DNA of 64,000 nucleotides from Fonticula alba ATCC 38817 (taxonomy: Eukaryota; Protista; Nucleariida), in assembly GCA_000388065.2 (NCBI GenBank), contig KB932203.1. The stretch is one strand, 5' to 3'. Position numbers and translations under genes: made by a program. Shown piece after piece: positions 3,383-50,678 of the stretch. The notes below the pieces were generated by a model that worked only from the letters and a program-made list of their open reading frames with translations, was not told the origin of the DNA and ran no database searches. The first letter of the stretch is position 1. The number at the start of each line of letters is the position of its first letter.

Positions 3383-4183
3383 GGTGACAGGTACACGACA
3401 AATGCTCGGGAGAATCTGCTGAGGAGGGGGAGAACACAGGAATGTCAGGATTGGTGAGGGGTGCGAAGCCAAGTGCCAAGAAAGGAGGGAGGGAGAGAGA
3501 GAGAGAGATAGGAGGGAGTGCGACATGTCCCTGTGAGGCGCGGCAGGCGGTCCGGGAAGCGAGGCGTGTATGTGTGCGAGGGTGTACGAGCGCGGGCGCC
3601 CGATGGTGGAGGAGAATGGGTCACGCTCCCCACCGACACCATATACATGCGCGTGCGCGCGCGCGCACACACACACACACAGACATGCCTCCCGTCAGGC
3701 CAGTCACGCGCTAGGGAGGAGAGTCGACTGCGTGGGGGAGCCGAGAGGAGAGGGGGAGAATCACCGACATGGGGTGATATATACTGCATTGGTGTGAAGC
3801 AGGAGATGGGGGAAGAGGAGAGGGAGAGAGAAGAATCCAGTGTCGCCGCCTGTGGGCACAGGGCGGCTCTCCGACACTCCCGAGGGGGGCTCTCCACGAG
3901 AAGCCAGTGACACCGACAGGGCGTCTGTGGAGAGGGGAGGGAGGGGGGAGCCAGCGGGGAGCGCGCTCGCGCGCAGGCATTCGAGGGCGAATGGAGCAGG
4001 AGGGAGAGGGAAGAGGAGGGGGAGGGGGAGGGGGAAGAAGAGAGCACGAACCTCGACAACTGTGCGTAGGTCTGGCGGTGGGGGAGCTACGTGTGACCTG
4101 CCGACATTTCAATTCGCCGGGCGCTGGGGAGGGGCGGGGGCGCGCGTGGGGCCAAGAGAGAGCCAGCCACGTCGGGTCCGCAC

Positions 4184-14043: not shown

Positions 14044-14131
14044 CCAACCATAGCTCAATTGGTAGAGCATCAGACTGTAGTGGTAAAAAGCAATTATCTG
14101 AGGGTCGCTGGTTCGATTCCGGCTGGTTGGA
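14044..14131 (+). tRNA. tRNA-Tyr(GTA) with 15-nt intron, copy 1
   Basis: Acceptor CCAACCA/TGGTTGG, A73, D arm GCTC-AATTGGTA-GAGC, anticodon stem TCAGA/TCTGA, loop CT-GTA-G^A with intron TGGTAAAAAGCAATT at 37/38, T arm GCTGG-TTCGATT-CCGGC. Confidence 0.96.
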
Positions 14132-14550
14132 TCCAACCNNNNNNNNNNNNNNNNNNNNNNNNNNNNNNNNNNNNNNNNNNNNNNNNNNNNNNNNNNNNNN
14201 NNNNNNNNNNNNNNNNNNNNNNNNNNNNNNNNNNNNNNNNNNNNNNNNNNNNNNNNNNNNNNNNNNNNNNNNNNNNNNNNNNNNNNNNNNNNNNNNNNNN
14301 NNNNNNNNNNNNNNNNNNNNNNNNNNNNNNNNNNNNNNNNNNNNNNNNNNNNNNNNNNNNNNNNNNNNNNNNNNNNNNNNNNNNNNNNNNNNNNNNNNNN
14401 NNNNNNNNNNNNNNNNNNNNNNNNNNNNNNNNNNNNNNNNNNNNNNNNNNNNNNNNNNNNNNNNNNNNNNNNNNNNNNNNNNNNNNNNNNNNNNNNNNNN
14501 NNNNNNNNNNNNNNNNNNNNNNNNNNNNNNNNNNNNNNNNNNNCTGCCAG

Positions 14551-14638
14551 CCAACCATAGCTCAATTGGTAGAGCATCAGACTGTAGCGGTTGTAAGCAA
14601 TTATCTGAGGGTCGCTGGTTCGATTCCGGCTGGTTGGA
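14551..14638 (+). tRNA. tRNA-Tyr(GTA) with 15-nt intron, copy 2
   Basis: Same mature sequence; intron CGGTTGTAAGCAATT; CTTTT trailer downstream. Confidence 0.96.
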
Positions 14639-14719
14639 CACTACTCTTTTGCCCCCGGCGCCGTTTGCGGGCCCGCCTTTCTCTTTTCTCGTCACCTTGC
14701 ATGTGGACCACATCCATAT

Positions 14720-14754
<35 letters not shown>

Positions 14755-14929
14755 GCAACACAGTCACACGTAACCTCCGATTGGTGGCGGTGCGTGTGCG
14801 CGTGCGTGTGCGTGCGCGCGTCCACGACGGCTTCCGTTTCGCAGTCCCTGCCACCTGGAGATATTTCTCCTGTCTGCGCCGTAAGCTCCAGGAGTCCTTT
14901 ATGTTCTGAGAAATCAAGTGCCGGTTCAA

Positions 14930-15017
14930 CCAACCATAGCTCAATTGGTAGAGCATCAGACTGTAGCGGTTGTAAGCAATTATCTGAGGGTCGCTGGTTC
15001 GATTCCGGCTGGTTGGA
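14930..15017 (+). tRNA. tRNA-Tyr(GTA) with 15-nt intron, copy 3
   Basis: Same mature sequence; intron CGGTTGTAAGCAATT; CTTTT trailer. Confidence 0.96.
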
Positions 15018-15308
15018 TCCTTCCTTTTGATCGTTTGGCCTGACGCATCTTTTGCACGAGGAGTCATCAAGGGGGCTGGGGGGAGGGGGTGTGAGGGAGA
15101 GGACCAGGGGGAGAGAGAGAGAGAGAGAGAGGGAGAGAGACGCGTGCTCCTGGGGTGTGGTGTCGGGATAGAGCGTCTGTCCGACATGATATGTCTCTTT
15201 GATCTCCCCCGGGGTGTCCGCCCACCCATTTCTCTCTCCTTGCTAAAAAAAAGTTCCCCCCATCCCCTCCTACCTAGAGGCGCACCTGTTGTCGGCAAAA
15301 GGGTAGTG

Positions 15309-15396
15309 TCCAACCAGCCGGAATCGAACCAGCGACCCTCAGATAATTGCTTGTAACCGCTACAGTCTGATGCTCTACCAATTGAGCTATGGTTGG
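15309..15396 (-). tRNA. tRNA-Tyr(GTA) with 15-nt intron, copy 4 (inverted)
   Basis: Reverse complement of the same tRNA; intron CGGTTACAAGCAATT; trailer CACTACCCTTTTGC. Confidence 0.96.
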
Positions 15397-15837
15397 TTGG
15401 GAGGTCAGACACCCAAAACGTCTTAAATAGATTCAGGTGCTTGCCCAGCCGCTGGCGCGCCTCGCCTTTTTCCCTCAGGCACCTGCCAGCCTCCCCCGGC
15501 TTGGGGGCGGCGCGCCTGTCCACCCTGTTACTGAGAGCCTGACCCCTCTGCCACTCGGCGCCGGGCGAAATGAGACGCAGCGGCCACACTGTGGGGCGGG
15601 GGGGAATGGGCCGCACGGCTTCTCAGCATGGCCCCCGGGAAACCGTGGCAGCTGGCCAGACGTGAAAGCAGTGCCAAAGAGTGCCTGTCTTCCACCCTCC
15701 ACTGCTGCCATCCTGAAGCACATATCCGCGGCCCTTGCGGGACTCAGGCAAGGGATGGAGGAAGGTAAGAAGGTGTCTCGTGAGGTGACTTCGAAATTCC
15801 GAAGCGACTTGAGCACCAGATGCTGGCGCTCTGCCAG

Positions 15838-15925
15838 CCAACCATAGCTCAATTGGTAGAGCATCAGACTGTAGCGGTTACAAGCAATTATCTGAGGGTC
15901 GCTGGTTCGATTCCGGCTGGTTGGA
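15838..15925 (+). tRNA. tRNA-Tyr(GTA) with 15-nt intron, copy 5
   Basis: Same mature sequence; intron CGGTTACAAGCAATT; trailer CACTACCCTTTTGC. Confidence 0.96.
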
Positions 15926-16847
15926 CACTACCCTTTTGCGGCTCAGGGCGCCTGCAGTCGGTTTTCTGCCGCTCATCGTTGCCAGACGGTGAGGAGGAGG
16001 GGGGGACTGCGCGACAAACAGCCGGGGTTCCTCCGAGAACCCGGAGGGAGGAGGAGGAGGACAGGAAGCCACGAGGAGAGAGAGGGGCGACTTGGACCGC
16101 GGGGAAGGAGAGGGGGGGGGGGGGGGAAAGGCCGGTGGCGGCACACCAGAGGGACCGATGGCTGAGTCTCGAACACCCGGGGGCGGGGGGGGCCGGGTGA
16201 TGTGCCTGCATTGCGCATCCGTGGATGTGCATTTTCCCGTGTCCCTTCCTTCTCCCCTCGGGGGCCCCTCGTGGCGGGTGGGTGGGCTCCCCAGACCGCG
16301 GAGATCCTAACCGCACGAGGGAGGGACAGTCTGCAGTCGTAGACTGTATACTGTGCTCTCGCTGAGTTTTCTAGAAAAGGGACGTGATACAGGAATAACA
16401 TTCCACAGGTACTCGGAGGCACCCCCCTTTGCCCCCCCCCCCCGGAAACCACTTTCCCTCCGCTCGGTCTTTTCTTCCCAGCCCTTCCTCAGTCTCGCCC
16501 AGGGAAAGCGCCGGCGAGAAGGGACGGGGCACTTGGGCCTGGGCGAGATTTGCATGCCGGGCCTCCCCCCCCCCCCTCTCTCTCTGTCCCGGGGAACTGG
16601 CCCCTCGTCCCTGTTCCGCAGGCGCGGCCACCAGGGAGGGGGGGGCGGGGACAGGGTGGGCAGGGGACCCCAGACCCGGACACACGCGCTCACACGCGCA
16701 CACCTGCTCCCCATTGTGGGTTTATGCTCTGCGCACGCGGCCGCGCGCGCGCGCGCGCGCGCGCATGCCCCGAACAACCTCCCCGGGGCGGACTCCGGCC
16801 GGCGGCCGCGGCCCTCTCAGAGCGCCTTCTTTCTACACAAGCACACC

Positions 16848-45157: not shown

Positions 45158-47891
45158 TGCACAGCGGGAGGAGAAGGGTTGGGGAGGGCTGGCCAGGGGG
45201 CAAGAGGAGAGAAGGGGGCGCGGGGCAACGGGAGCAGGGCGAAAAAGGGGTGGAGGAGAAGGGGGAGGGGGGGGGGGGGAAGGAGCTCCAGTAGGGAAAG
45301 CACGCTGGCGGGGGAGATCCCCGCCCCCGGGCGCCGGGGCACTGCCCGATGACTCGATCCCCCCCCCCCCCCCCTCCGGGGGTGCCTCGAAGGGTGGTGG
45401 TCTGGACGCAGGTGGGGGGGGAGTGGAGCACGCTGCCGCTCGCGATCCGGTCACGTAGGTGCGTTGTCCCACGTTGGGGGGCGGGCTGCGAGCGGGGGGG
45501 GGGCTCTGCTCGACCCGGCCCTGGCGTCGAGACATCGCGCGGGCGGGTGGCGGGACAATCGGCCAGCCGGGGGCGTGCGGACTGGCGGAACCGAGGCAGG
45601 CGTACCAGATTGCCCTGGCAATGGGGGTCGTTATTTCGGGGTCGATCCGTCGGTTTCCGCGCGGGCGCGCGGAAACACACGCACACGCCCGCCCGCACCC
45701 ATGTGCGCGCACAGACGCAGGCGCTTGCCCCCCAAACACAGGGCGGCGGGACTTGCACGCGCTGACACCGGCGTGTGTGTATGTGTGTGGGGGGGGGGCG
45801 GGGGTGGGCGGGCTCGGGCTTTCCGGCCGGCAGTGCGAACACGGAAAGGGCGCCGCGCATGAGCTTATCTCGAAAATCAATGTGCATAACGGAAATTGGC
45901 AAACGGCCGGGATTAATGAATGGCCGCCCGGGTCCGGGCGCTCGTCGGACCGGGGGGAGACGCGAGAAGCCGCCCTCCCGAAGGGCAAGCGCCCGCGGTC
46001 AGCTAGCGGTCATCCCCGGTTTCTGCCTGCCGGCCTGCCTGCGATGTGTCCAGGACAAGGTGCCAGGGGGTGGCGGGGGACTGCAGAAGCCCGCCGGCAG
46101 GCGGACCTGGGCACCCGCCGGCCGGAGTGGCCCGGCGGTGACCAGGCACGCCCCCTCAAGAGAGCGAGAGGGAGGCACCGCGCACGGCGCCTGTGTCCGG
46201 GGAGGGGGGGGGGGGNNNNNNNNNNNNNNNNNNNNNNNNNNNNNNNNNNNNNNNNNNNNNNNNNNNNNNNNNNNNNNNNNNNNNNNNNNNNNNNNNNNNN
46301 NNNNNNNNNNNNNNNNNNNNNNNNNNNNNNNNNNNNNNNNNNNNNNNNNNNNNNNNNNNNNNNNNNNNNNNNNNNNNNNNNNNNNNNNNNNNNNNNNNNN
46401 NNNNNNNNNNNNNNNNNNNNNNNNNNNNNNNNNNNNNNNNNNNNNNNNNNNNNNNNNNNNNNNNNNNNNNNNNNNNNNNNNNNNNNNNNNNNNNNNNNNN
46501 NNNNNNNNNNNNNNNNNNNNNNNNNNNNNNNNNNNNNNNNNNNNNNNNNNNNNNNNNNNNNNNNNNNNNNNNNNNNNNNNNNNNNNNNNNNNNNNNNNNN
46601 NNNNNNNNNNNNNNNNNNNNNNNNNNNNNNNNNNNNNNNNNNNNNNNNNNNNNNNNNNNNNNNNNNNNNNNNNNNNNNNNNNNNNNNNNNNNNNNNNNNN
46701 NNNNNNNNNNNNNNNNNNNNNNNNNNNNNNNNNNNNNNNNNNNNNNNNNNNNNNNNNNNNNNNNNNNNNNNNNNNNNNNNNNNNNNNNNNNNNNNNNNNN
46801 NNNNNNNNNNNNNNNNNNNNNNNNNNNNNNNNNNNNNNNNNNNNNNNNNNNNNNNNNNNNNNNNNNNNNNNNNNNNNNNNNNNNNNNNNNNNNNNNNNNN
46901 NNNNNNNNNNNNNNNNNNNNNNNNNNNNNNNNNNNNNNNNNNNNNNNNNNNNNNNNNNNNNNNNNNNNNNNNNNNNNNNNNNNNNNNNNNNNNNNNNNNN
47001 NNNNNNNNNNNNNNNNNNNNNNNNNNNNNNNNNNNNNNNNNNNNNNNNNNNNNNNNNNNNCACACACACACACACACACACACACATGTGCGCGCGCGCG
47101 CGGAAATCCGCGCACATACACGCCCAAAGGGACCGGTGCCGCGCTGCGCCTAGGGTTGATTTAGGGTAGTCGGTTGGCATTTGGGAAGCCCCCCGGCTGC
47201 CGGCGGACCCGCGCCAGCGATCACCCTCCTCCCTCTGGACCGGGGGGAGGCACACCAAGCCGCCATACCGCCCCACCCAGAGGCTGAGGCCGAAGCGAGG
47301 CGGGAAGCCTGTTCGATGGACACGATCATTGTGTGCGTGTGTGTGTGCGGGGGAGGGGGGGGGGGATGATGTTTCACCTCATTAACACCAGGGCGGCCCG
47401 GCGCGCCCGCGGCCCGGGGGGAGGCTGGCGGGTACTGCGCGTTGGCGATGGCGTCGCCCCCCCCCCCTCCCCCACTCGCCACCACTTGGGGGGAGGTGAG
47501 CACAGTGGCCGGGGGAATGTGCGAGCCCGGGGAGAAGAGGCTGGCCCCCAGCACATGCGCATTTGCACGACAATTCAGGGGGATATTTGACAGCCATGTG
47601 GATGAGGCAGGGTTCTTGCCGACTCAACTTTACGTCAAAGGAGCGAGGCTTTGACGGAGGCTATGCCGTAAATCTCGCCGCTGGCCAGTGACCATCCTCG
47701 GCCAAAGGAGGGGCGTGCCGGACCAGCATGGGGGGGAGGGACAGTGTTACTTGCGAAGGGGGCGCGCGGTGATGCGGCCCAGGGGGGGAGGCCCGAGTTA
47801 GTGGGCAAGCAACATGGACAACACTTCGGGCAGCCAAGGGCTTCCCCTCTCGAAGCCTTGGAACAGACGCTCGCAGGCCGAGGCTTCGAAG

Positions 47892-47960
47892 GCCATCCTT
47901 TCGCATACTCTCCGATACACACGATCATCAGCTGCTAAGGCTTTCTGCTCTCAGGAGGCT
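47892..47960 (-). ncRNA. Type III hammerhead ribozyme motif
   Basis: Minus strand: agCCU-C | CUG agagcagaaagccuuag CAG | CUGAUGA | uCGUGU guaucgga gAGUAUGc-type stem II | GAA | AGG. CUGAUGA = 47931-47925, GAAA = 47902-47899, CUC triplet with predicted cleavage between 47955 and 47954. Stem I CUG/CAG, stem III CCU/AGG. Position 10.1-11.1 is a U.C mismatch. Confidence 0.62.
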
Positions 47961-48778
47961 CTCTCAATGGGCGCCCGCCTTCGGGCCTTGTGTTGGCCGA
48001 GGGCCGGATTTGAGTACCCCCGCGTAGACGCGTGTCGCCCCCCCCCCTCTTGCCTGGGCCTTTTGCCCGTAATGGGTCCCCGGTACCGGGAGGCCTCCCG
48101 GCTCCCGTGCGACCCCGCATTCCTCCACCGATGGAATACTATTCCGCTGTGCCTGACTGCTTCACGGGATCCACTTATGGGGTGTTAACTGACCAGTGAT
48201 TCGATTCGCGGCGCTGGGGATGCCATGTCATCCGATGTAGCAGGGTTCTCACGGATCCAGTCTTACGTCAAAGGAGTGAAGCTTTGACGGAAGCTATACC
48301 GGAAATCTTACTACTGGTTAGGGACCGCTCGGGCATGAAGGAGGGCGTACCGAACCAGAAGGGNNNNNNNNNNNNNNNNNNNNNNNNNNNNNNNNNNNNN
48401 NNNNNNNNNNNNNNNNNNNNNNNNNNNNNNNNNNNNNNNNNNNNNNNNNNNNNNNNNNNNNNNNNNNNNNNNNNNNNNNNNNNNNNNNNNNNNNNNNNNN
48501 NNNNNNNNNNNNNNNNNNNNNNNNNNNNNNNNNNNNNNNNNNNNNNNNNNNNNNNNNNNNNNNNNNNNNNNNNNNNNNNNNNNNNNNNNNNNNNNNNNNN
48601 NNNNNNNNNNNNNNNNNNNNNNNNNNNNNNNNNNNNNNNNNNNNNNNNNNNNNNNNNNNNNNNNNNNNNNNNNNNNNNNNNNNNNNNNNNNNNNNNNNNN
48701 NNNNNNNNNNNNNNNNNNNNNNNNNNNNNNNNNNNNNNNNNNNNNNNNNNNNNNNNNNNNNNNNNNNNNNNNNNNNNN

Positions 48779-48808
48779 AGCTGCTAAGGTCTTCGCTCTC
48801 AGGAGGCT
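48779..48808 (-). ncRNA. 5' half of a second hammerhead motif; the rest falls in the N-gap
   Basis: Minus strand GAGCCUC-CUG-agagcgaagaccuuag-CAG-CU, ending exactly at the gap. Same cleavage triplet and stem I as copy 1; only the loop differs. Confidence 0.5.
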
Positions 48809-50678
48809 CCCGCAGGGAGTCCCCCTTTTGACCTTGGGTTGGTCGTGGGGTGGATCTGAGAACCCCGCGCGCACGCGTGTCTCCCTCCTTTCCTGGGCCA
48901 CCGAACTGGCCCGGTACTCGGCGGCCATCTGGCTGTCGATCTACCCCGCATTCCTCCTGAGGAGGAATGCCATTCAAGCATGCCATAATCTCCCACGGGG
49001 CCGTTCACGTGGGGATCTTGTAATTCAACCTGTGACTTGGTTTATAGAGATTGGGGGATACCACTACATCCGAACATTCTCGGCGTGACGGACTCGTATT
49101 CACGTGCGAGCCCCGCCTATCAGGGTTAAGTGCACCGGCACGCTGGCCCGGCCGCCAAAGGAGCAGAGGTAACGGGGGGGGGGGGGGCGCGGAACGCAGC
49201 CAGCCCCGAGGGCAGGGGGTCCCAGGGGGCGCCGGTCACCGGAGGGATATTCACGGAGGAGGGGCGGCACTTCGCCGAATTTGGAGACCACTTTGGAGGA
49301 TTTTTCCCCATCTGGGCCCTCCGGAGTGTCCCGATTCCGGGGGGGGGGGGGAGGGGGCTGGGCGTCCCCCCTCCCCCCCTTGCAACGAAGGGCCATCCGC
49401 ACGGTCCGAGGGGGAGAACTGGGCAGGACTCCCGGCGCCCAGATGCCCAGTCAATGAATTTCACTCTCCGGCCCCACATAACCCCCCCCCCCCCGGCTGC
49501 GTGAGAGAGCACACGCGTGAGGGCATATTTACGCGCTCCTGTGCCGCCCGTTCAGGTGTGCGGCCTCGACCGGTCCAGAGCGGCGGCGGACCCCTCAAAA
49601 GGGCGGGGCTTCTTCGCTGGCGTGCATCTTCCGGTCGAAAGGCCAGGCGCGCCTTGCTTTCTTCCGCGGTGGGGCGGTATCCTGGTCGCGCTTGTCAGCT
49701 GGCCGGCGACGGCCGGAAAGGGGCGGAAGGGGAGGGGCGGCGCATGTGAAACACGCCCCTGGGGGAAAGGCGGGATCGCCGCACTCGGGGAGATTCCACC
49801 CTTCTCGCGGACCTTCTAGATGTAGCCCGGGCCTCTTGCGTGTGCACCGGGGCTTTCGCCCCTGCCGGCGTGGGGCCGCCCGATCGCCTTCGGCGATCCT
49901 CCCTGCCCAGGGGGCGTGTTGTGCGCATGCGTGTGTGTTGGGCACCACACCAGATACCCATACGTGGGTCTCCCTGGGGGGGGGAGGGGGGGCCGATCAT
50001 CGCAAAAGCAATCTTCCCCAGATCTCCGCCAGTATGATCGACCTGATGTGGCCCCCGGCGCACCTCCCCCCGGGGAGGGGGGCGGGGGCGGGGGGGATGC
50101 GCTGCGCCGACCAGGGGGGCCGGTGGTTCTCTCCTCTTCCGTTTTTCCCGCGGGGGGCGAGGACCGTGCCCGCCCTGGGCGTGGTGTGTGTGTGTGTGTG
50201 GGCGCTTTGGCACTCCGCCCCCCNNNNNNNNNNNNNNNNNNNNNNNNNNNNNNNNNNNNNNNNNNNNNNNNNNNNNNNNNNNNNNNNNNNNNNNNNNNNN
50301 NNNNNNNNNNNNNNNNNNNNNNNNNNNNNNNNNNNNNNNNNNNNNNNNNNNNNNNNNNNNNNNNNNNNNNNNNNNNNNNNNNNNNNNNNNNNNNNNNNNN
50401 NNNNNNNNNNNNNNNNNNNNNNNNNNNNNNCCCCCCCGCGTCCCGGGGCATGCCTCATGCTCCGGATGGGGGAGTCTCCTTTCGTCGAGTGGTGAGCCTC
50501 TTAAGCATCCGCCCCCGGTGGCCGTGTGTACTCCAGCCTGTACAAGCCCAGCCACCTCACCTACACACCACAGGAGACTCTACCCTTTTTGCTCTCCTCC
50601 CCCCTCCCCCTCGTTCTGCCTCCCGCCTCTTCTCTGCGCCCGCCGTCTGTCGCAAGAATACAAACTCCCGACCGCGCC

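Follow-up and report, generated by a model that had tools for sequence, protein, structure and literature searches.

In a 64,000-nucleotide stretch of contig KB932203.1 of the protist Fonticula alba ATCC 38817 (assembly GCA_000388065.2; the whole stretch is referred to as the window, and positions given without a contig name are window positions), two units of about 630 nt follow one another head to tail on the plus strand: unit 1 at 47603-48230 (628 nt) and unit 2 at 48236-49068. A first-pass annotation, made from the letters alone, had taken them for a candidate retrozyme or viroid-like circular RNA element. From searches of the genome to which the window belongs (31.3 Mb in 214 contigs, of which C1, C4, C22 and others appear below), we conclude that both units are very probably long terminal repeats (LTRs) of LTR retrotransposons and members of one superfamily. 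The tandem is an old LTR followed by a young one, separate insertions that took place in succession at one 5-bp spot. The superfamily is one of ordinary retrotransposon LTRs.

Anatomy and age of the two LTRs

Unit 2 is a copy of a young, recently active family, here called family A, the LTR of which is 624 nt long and has TGTAG...CTACA ends, that is, a 5-nt terminal inverted repeat. The 5' part of unit 2 (48236-48363) occurs at 15 other genomic places with 99-100% identity (16 with the window), and its 3' part (48779-49068) at 12 others with the same identity (13 with the window); in all, family A amounts to about 15 dispersed, near-identical insertions. The LTR of a second family, family B, is 593 nt long, has the same TGTAG...CTACA ends and is found at about 30 places with 98-100% identity. 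All 16 family A and B copies for which both flanks can be read are enclosed by a perfect 5-bp duplication that differs from site to site. The superfamily comprises at least nine lineages; the nine that we compared are 54-86% identical and collinear from the initial TG to the final CA. Taken together, the TG...CA ends, the short inverted repeat, the 5-bp duplication and the dispersed, near-identical family make up the anatomy of an LTR. The check for which the first-pass annotation had called, a genome-wide search for a family and its target-site duplications, was therefore positive. We found no description of LTR families of Fonticula alba in the literature searched, where the one figure for the species is a bulk repeat content of 0.36%.

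The features of the locus are the following, with strand given where there is one.

47580-47599, plus strand: short resemblance to the 3' end of an LTR, with 9 nt inserted between GGGGGAT and CCATGT; outside any detectable LTR
47603-48230, plus strand: unit 1, complete LTR (628 nt) belonging to an old lineage; starts TGAGGCAGGG, ends GGGGATGCCATGTCA
48231-48235, no strand: left copy of the unit 2 target-site duplication, TCCGA; flush with the unit 1 3' end and identical to 49069-49073
48236-48363, plus strand: unit 2, family A positions 1-128; starts TGTAGCAGGG; 99.2% identical to the reference copy L062:521-1144
48266-48289, plus strand: hairpin CGTCAAAG-loop-CTTTGACG, the stem kept in 9/9 lineages; the unit 1 equivalent is at 47633-47656
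48364-48778, no strand: assembly gap of 415 N; expected content is family A positions 129-334 (206 nt) if unit 2 is a solo LTR, the element interior if it is full-length
48779-49068, plus strand: unit 2, family A positions 335-624; ends GGGGGATACCACTACA; 100% identical to the reference copy L062:521-1144
49069-49073, no strand: right copy of the unit 2 target-site duplication, TCCGA
49085-49089, plus strand: GTGAC, 11 nt past the unit 2 duplication; one of the seven fixed-offset motifs described below

Unit 1, with its TGAGG...GTCA (TG...CA) ends, aligns from TG to CA with families A and B and likewise with six further lineages. Furthermore, it is matched end to end (E = 5e-79) by a profile hidden Markov model (HMM) of the eight other lineages, which was built without it. 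Unit 1 has no close copy: its best genomic match elsewhere is 67% identical, and its overall identity to the family A LTR is 64-66%. Unit 2 is thus 99-100% identical to dispersed copies and only about 65% identical to its neighbour, and it has a target-site duplication of its own; the two units are therefore insertions of different age, and not, as had been proposed, a reverse-transcribed concatemer of one circle.

The tandem arrangement of two collinear units reported by the first-pass annotation was correct, as was its statement that they contain no conserved open reading frame, while its period of 633 nt holds for one part of the locus only. A repeat finder detects a direct repeat of 93 nt (47601-47693 versus 48234-48326, 76% identity) at a spacing of 633, which is the length of the 628-nt unit 1 LTR plus the 5-bp duplication; past the gap in unit 2, the matched blocks are spaced by 849, 845 and 831 nt. 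Tandem Repeats Finder, run on the region, reported nothing but simple repeats. The annotation had also counted a third junction motif upstream of unit 1 and read it as terminal redundancy. There, the GGGGGAT and CCATGT parts are separated by 9 nt, and an nhmmer search (E<=10) with the eight-lineage profile HMM found no LTR body upstream of unit 1; as no LTR body precedes the motif, terminal redundancy is not shown. A third, older LTR at this place was considered and rejected: local alignments score at or near the range of shuffled sequences, their registers are inconsistent, and the profile search is empty.

Conserved stems without a ribozyme

The two arms of the long-range helix of about 22 bp that had been described in unit 2 (48243-48267 and 48844-48865) correspond to LTR positions 8-32 and 400-421, and their pairing is predicted by RNAalifold on the nine-lineage alignment. 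The complementarity is real and conserved: it is paired in 81-88% of cells across the nine lineages, as compared to 4-70% after a shift of the partner arm by 1-3 columns. The covariation claimed for it did not survive the comparison. Compensatory change is seen in just 1 of the 22 pairs, that between positions 24 and 407 (A-U <-> G-C), both arms being simply conserved, and the RNAalifold covariation term for the nine-lineage alignment is +0.32 kcal/mol, that is, there is no net covariation. Two of the local hairpins, CGTCAAAG/CTTTGACG and GCATTCC/GGAAT, are conserved in the nine-lineage alignment. Changes in the CGTCAAAG/CTTTGACG stem are few, mostly G.U wobbles on the plus strand and never two-sided; their wobble type hints at constraint at the RNA level. 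As judged by comparison with 20 shuffles each, the family A LTR folds with z = -2.8 and unit 1 with z = +0.9, which is no better than its shuffles.

We searched for ribozymes with Rfam on both strands of 47060-49700 and of complete family A and B copies, and at E<=10 found no hammerhead, HDV-like, twister, pistol or any other ribozyme. The Rfam matches that do reach the gathering threshold or E<=10 in the window, the region and the complete LTR copies are chance microRNA-like ones lying on G/C runs. Nor is a CUGANGA box conserved among the lineages; it is present in a few, at different places. We infer that the conserved LTR stems serve the element as signals in replication or expression and not as a ribozyme; more speculatively, the long complementarity might bring the ends of the RNA together.

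A retrozyme or viroid-like element, the RNA of which would cleave itself, circularise and be reverse-transcribed as a concatemer, is in our judgement very improbable at this locus. The head-to-tail units, the conserved stems and long-range complementarity and the somewhat better-than-shuffled fold of the family A LTR are all features that such an element could show, but no ribozyme family is found on either strand and the CUGANGA core is not conserved, the two units differ at about 35% of positions whereas unit 2 equals dispersed copies, each copy has a separate 5-bp duplication, and neither the fold of unit 1 nor the covariation term lends support. What remains of the ribozyme-bearing mobile RNA that had been suggested is its mobility and its origin from a retroelement. 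Less probable still, and in fact refuted by the dispersed family, is the idea that a segment of non-mobile DNA was simply duplicated in tandem long ago. It would account for two collinear units that adjoin, yet about 15 dispersed copies match unit 2 at 99-100% identity, unit 2 has a perfect duplication as well, and unit 1, which is 64.5% identical to the copy at C1:3554171, is closer to lineages elsewhere than a local duplicate requires.

The gap in unit 2 and the parent elements

The window contains three runs of unassembled bases (N), at 46216-47060, 48364-48778 and 50224-50430, the second of which interrupts unit 2. The sequences to its left and right correspond to reference LTR positions 1-128 and 335-624 in the same order and on the same strand and are therefore parts of one repeat; since TCCGA is identical on both outer sides, the two sides belong to one insertion. 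In the gap-free family A copies (C4:1312420-1313043 and C22:3508-4131), these pieces lie 206 nt apart within a whole of 624 nt, and the 415 N consequently overestimate the missing sequence by about 209 nt if unit 2 is a solo LTR. Other family A copies are broken at similar LTR positions, by gaps of 405-550 N or of about 3 kb. Throughout the assembly, contigs end at recurring LTR positions (about 128, 335 and 396 in family A; about 156, 445 and 546 in family B), which makes the N runs there poor estimates of size. Unit 2 is most likely a solo LTR left by LTR-LTR recombination.

Paired LTRs are seen in family B, in which two copies have the form LTR-N10-LTR (an incomplete LTR followed by ten N and another LTR) within a single duplication (C1:4489587-4490587 and C4:2270955-2272103). 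In one of them, the overlapping LTR parts differ by about 1.3%; they are therefore two LTRs of one element. In many other copies, the interior is a run of N of at least 1.3 kb. At C1:575437-580266 (L061), two family A halves share the duplication TGAAG and enclose a 3.1-kb N run together with 1.3 kb of sequence. As a candidate for the element interior, this 1.3-kb stretch was rejected, being unique, GC-rich and non-repeated; the scaffolder probably put a contig in the wrong place here. The sequences that adjoin the C2 copies are likewise unique and were also rejected.

The parent elements are probably of the Ty3/gypsy type. The only LTR-type pol genes that we found in the genome have the reverse transcriptase (RT) before the integrase (on C42 and C14, with RVT_1 ahead of rve), and the copia-type RVT_2 has no match anywhere in the genome. 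A degenerate frame with RVT_1, RT_RNaseH and Integrase_H2C2 lies at C1:158895-160652 on the plus strand, and about 1.4 kb downstream of it, at C1:162041-162230, there is a same-strand match to LTR positions of about 335-485. This match stands where a 3' LTR would be expected, and the positional link is the best that there is between these LTRs and a pol gene. None of the pol loci of the genome has superfamily LTRs within 1.5 kb. Contig C42, which is unplaced, single-copy in the assembly and 6.5 kb long, consists almost entirely of one gag-pol-type frame of 2046 aa with RVT_1 followed by rve (C42:439-6502; L084/L072/L067), and carries no LTR of the superfamily, its 289-nt 3' tail included.

LTRs of the superfamily are also found crowded together or inside one another. 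At C22:2400-4700 (L034/L057), a nest of at least four of them occupies 2.3 kb. It consists of a B-like stub of 53 nt, a B-like LTR with an insertion in it, a fragment of an LTR in reversed orientation, one family A copy on the minus strand (3508-4131) and a family B copy that starts at 4137. Elsewhere, an LTR is nested in another LTR 13 nt from its 5' end (C1:4741233-4741453; L023) or 29 nt from its 3' end (C20:30416-30445; L042). Such clustering is far above chance for a genome with 0.36% repeats.

Target motif, alternatives and comparison with known systems

Among 29 independent downstream flanks, the motif GTGAY (GTGAC or GTGAT) starts 16 nt after the LTR 3' end, that is, 11 nt past the duplication, in seven, and at any other offset it is found in at most one flank. 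Given a background of 0.0013 per position, this corresponds to P ~1e-14, or ~5e-13 when corrected for 56 positions. The seven are made up of five out of 11 flanks in family A and two out of 11 in family B, with none in the older lineages, and the bases that precede GTGAY tend toward CAYGTGAY or GCGTGAY. The fixed offset suggests motif-anchored targeting; as an observation it is new, if modest. On the upstream side, we detected no comparable target motif: a G at -14 (20/32) and GTG at -16 (5/32) are no more than marginal once multiple testing is taken into account, and TATA-like runs upstream of the insertions keep no fixed distance. A tRNA gene lies within 1.5 kb at only 4 of 41 LTR loci, and targeting to tRNA genes was rejected for these elements.

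Besides the fixed GTGAY, complete E-boxes (CACGTG or CATGTG) often occur in the 40 nt that follow an insertion site, for instance at the window copy (49099-49106) and at C2:3078413, C1:1161515 and C7:1311306. At C1:4670775 (L056), a family B LTR directly follows a tRNA-Phe(GAA)-like 5' half that extends to the anticodon loop, and a separate tRNA-Cys gene is found about 750 nt from this LTR.

A model of how two LTRs may have come to abut can be built on this motif. The integration machinery of the superfamily would be positioned by a factor bound to the E-box-like half site GTGAY or close to it, and strand transfer would take place in the 5 bp whose end lies 11 nt upstream of that site. Unit 1 would have landed first, keeping the right-hand target copy and the motif intact, and its 3' end would then have lain at the same distance from GTGAC; a family A element could later have taken the identical 5 bp, yielding LTR-TCCGA-LTR-TCCGA. 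Motif-anchored targeting would thereby explain two insertions on one site, and whether the motif did guide both elements to the same 5 bp we regard as evenly balanced. With somewhat less confidence than that, we tentatively propose a broader picture, in which integration 11 nt upstream of GTGAY is precise to a single nucleotide by virtue of a host DNA-binding tether, and in which the complementarity between LTR positions of about 1-30 and 400-421 possibly serves as a genome-cyclisation or priming signal, a kind undescribed for the clade.

Several observations weigh against this account as a whole or in part. Unit 1 lacks matching flanks (GTGGA on the left, TCCGA on the right), and its history is thus not that of a simple single insertion. 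The gap in unit 2 is compatible with either a solo LTR or a full-length element. Every long family A or B copy is interrupted by N, which makes both the Ty3/gypsy assignment and autonomy indirect. GTGAY was found post hoc, by inspecting the data, and marks only 7 of the 29 sites. Finally, there is a second flush case, on C22, in which the family A copy at 3508-4131 and the 5' end of the oppositely oriented B copy that starts at 4137 have one 5-bp duplication in common; this case has no GTGAY at the offset, and LTR ends may therefore be favoured by something else.

That something else could be the resident LTR end, which resembles the integrase's own unprocessed substrate end: the integrase would be drawn to it and insert in the adjoining 5 bp, with no host motif involved. 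Both flush family A copies (in the window and at C22:3508-4131) lie 5 bp from an older LTR terminus and share the duplication with it, and the LTR-in-LTR nests are at distances of 13 nt (C1:4741440) and 29 nt (C20:30416) from LTR ends, which makes attraction to LTR ends a live alternative, as does such clustering in a genome with 0.36% repeats. We nevertheless consider it unlikely, as the flush cases number only two, at least 12 of the 16 copies with both flanks readable are not beside another LTR, and the window site is already predicted by the motif. The other two alternatives concern the parent elements and seem to us to have a similarly small, though not negligible, chance of being right. 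Unit 2 might be a full-length family A element, the 5' and 3' LTRs of which the scaffolder joined over an unassembled interior. In favour of this, N interiors of about 3 kb stand between the same LTR break points in the C9 and C1 copies, family B copies of the LTR-N10-LTR form exist, and contigs of this assembly regularly end within these LTRs; the 415-N gap, however, groups with those of two other copies (405 and 550 N), far below an interior of 4-5 kb, and the left and right parts of unit 2 do not overlap and so give no sign of two distinct LTRs. Alternatively, families A and B might be non-autonomous, either large retrotransposon derivatives (LARD) or similar to terminal-repeat retrotransposons in miniature (TRIM), with interiors that lack gag-pol and are mobilised by a Ty3/gypsy element elsewhere. 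This would fit the absence of their LTRs within 1.5 kb of any pol-bearing locus and the absence of Pfam RT or integrase matches inside the candidate full-length copies C3:2711784-2717310 and C9:1044980-1051400. The readable edges of these intervals, however, are N (L050), and the lack of matches there therefore says little; moreover, the degenerate frame with RT, RNase H (RH) and integrase (IN) on C1 is followed downstream, at the distance to be expected, by a related LTR.

As regards its surroundings, the LTR pair sits in a divergent intergenic region flanked by a minus-strand myosin gene and a plus-strand GNAT acetyltransferase gene, in agreement with the first-pass annotation: Myosin_head matches on the minus strand reach as far as about 44.9 kb of the window, and the GNAT domain begins on the plus strand at about 50.5 kb. 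Far from this locus, at 14044-15926, Rfam reports five 88-nt tRNA matches with identical scores (four on the plus strand, one on the minus strand) within 1.9 kb, only two of which ARAGORN calls, both as tRNA-Thr(TGT). They form a small tandem or inverted gene cluster, perhaps of intron-containing genes.

The reassignment of the locus to LTRs removes a false lead, there being no retrozyme or viroid-like element here, and several impressions of 'structured RNA' in the Fonticula alba genome stem from the same LTR superfamily. It also provides a local assembly correction, the gap being about 209 nt too long if unit 2 is a solo copy. More generally, a young LTR family whose insertion site is sharply defined and anchored to a motif resides in the compact genome, poor in repeats, of a protist close to the base of the fungal lineage. 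If confirmed, this would be a new natural example of targeted integration beside Tf1/Sap1, Ty1 and Ty3 at RNA polymerase III genes and the Dictyostelium elements, and would offer a handle on a putative DNA-binding factor of Fonticula.

Of the known systems, the superfamily most resembles the LTRs of Ty3/gypsy elements (Metaviridae) in its TG...CA ends, short inverted repeat, 5-bp duplication, length of about 0.6 kb, dispersed near-identical copies and LTR pairs within single duplications, and the only pol genes of the genome are ordered RT-RNaseH-integrase; unlike them, families A and B are known from LTRs alone, the interior being N. The conserved long-range complementarity recalls Ty1, the RNA of which has a 5'-3' complementarity, CYC5/CYC3, reportedly described by Cristofari and colleagues in 2002. 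Here, too, a sequence at the presumed start of U3 is complementary to one further downstream in the LTR, and the two could pair the ends of the genomic RNA; the likeness is one of pure analogy, and only one pair covaries.

Plant retrozymes have a hammerhead in each LTR of 300-400 bp, a 4-bp duplication and a non-coding interior of 300-600 bp with a tRNA-Met primer-binding site and a polypurine tract (Cervera et al. 2016, PMC4918200). The superfamily shares with them non-coding direct repeats of the LTR type, short target-site duplications and solo-LTR copies in the genome (PMC4918200), and differs in having no ribozyme, a duplication of 5 bp and LTRs of 593-628 nt; furthermore, adjacent units are here separated by nothing but the 5-bp duplication and are unrelated insertions. 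The closest parallel for the target site is Tf1 of fission yeast, insertions of which cluster at -9 and +19 of the Sap1 motif. In both cases, insertions in intergenic or promoter DNA lie at a distance from a short motif that is fixed to the single nucleotide (here 7/29, 11 nt upstream of GTGAY), while, unlike Tf1/Sap1, the motif in Fonticula is the E-box-like GTGAY, is present on a quarter of the sites and would be read by a host factor that is putative.

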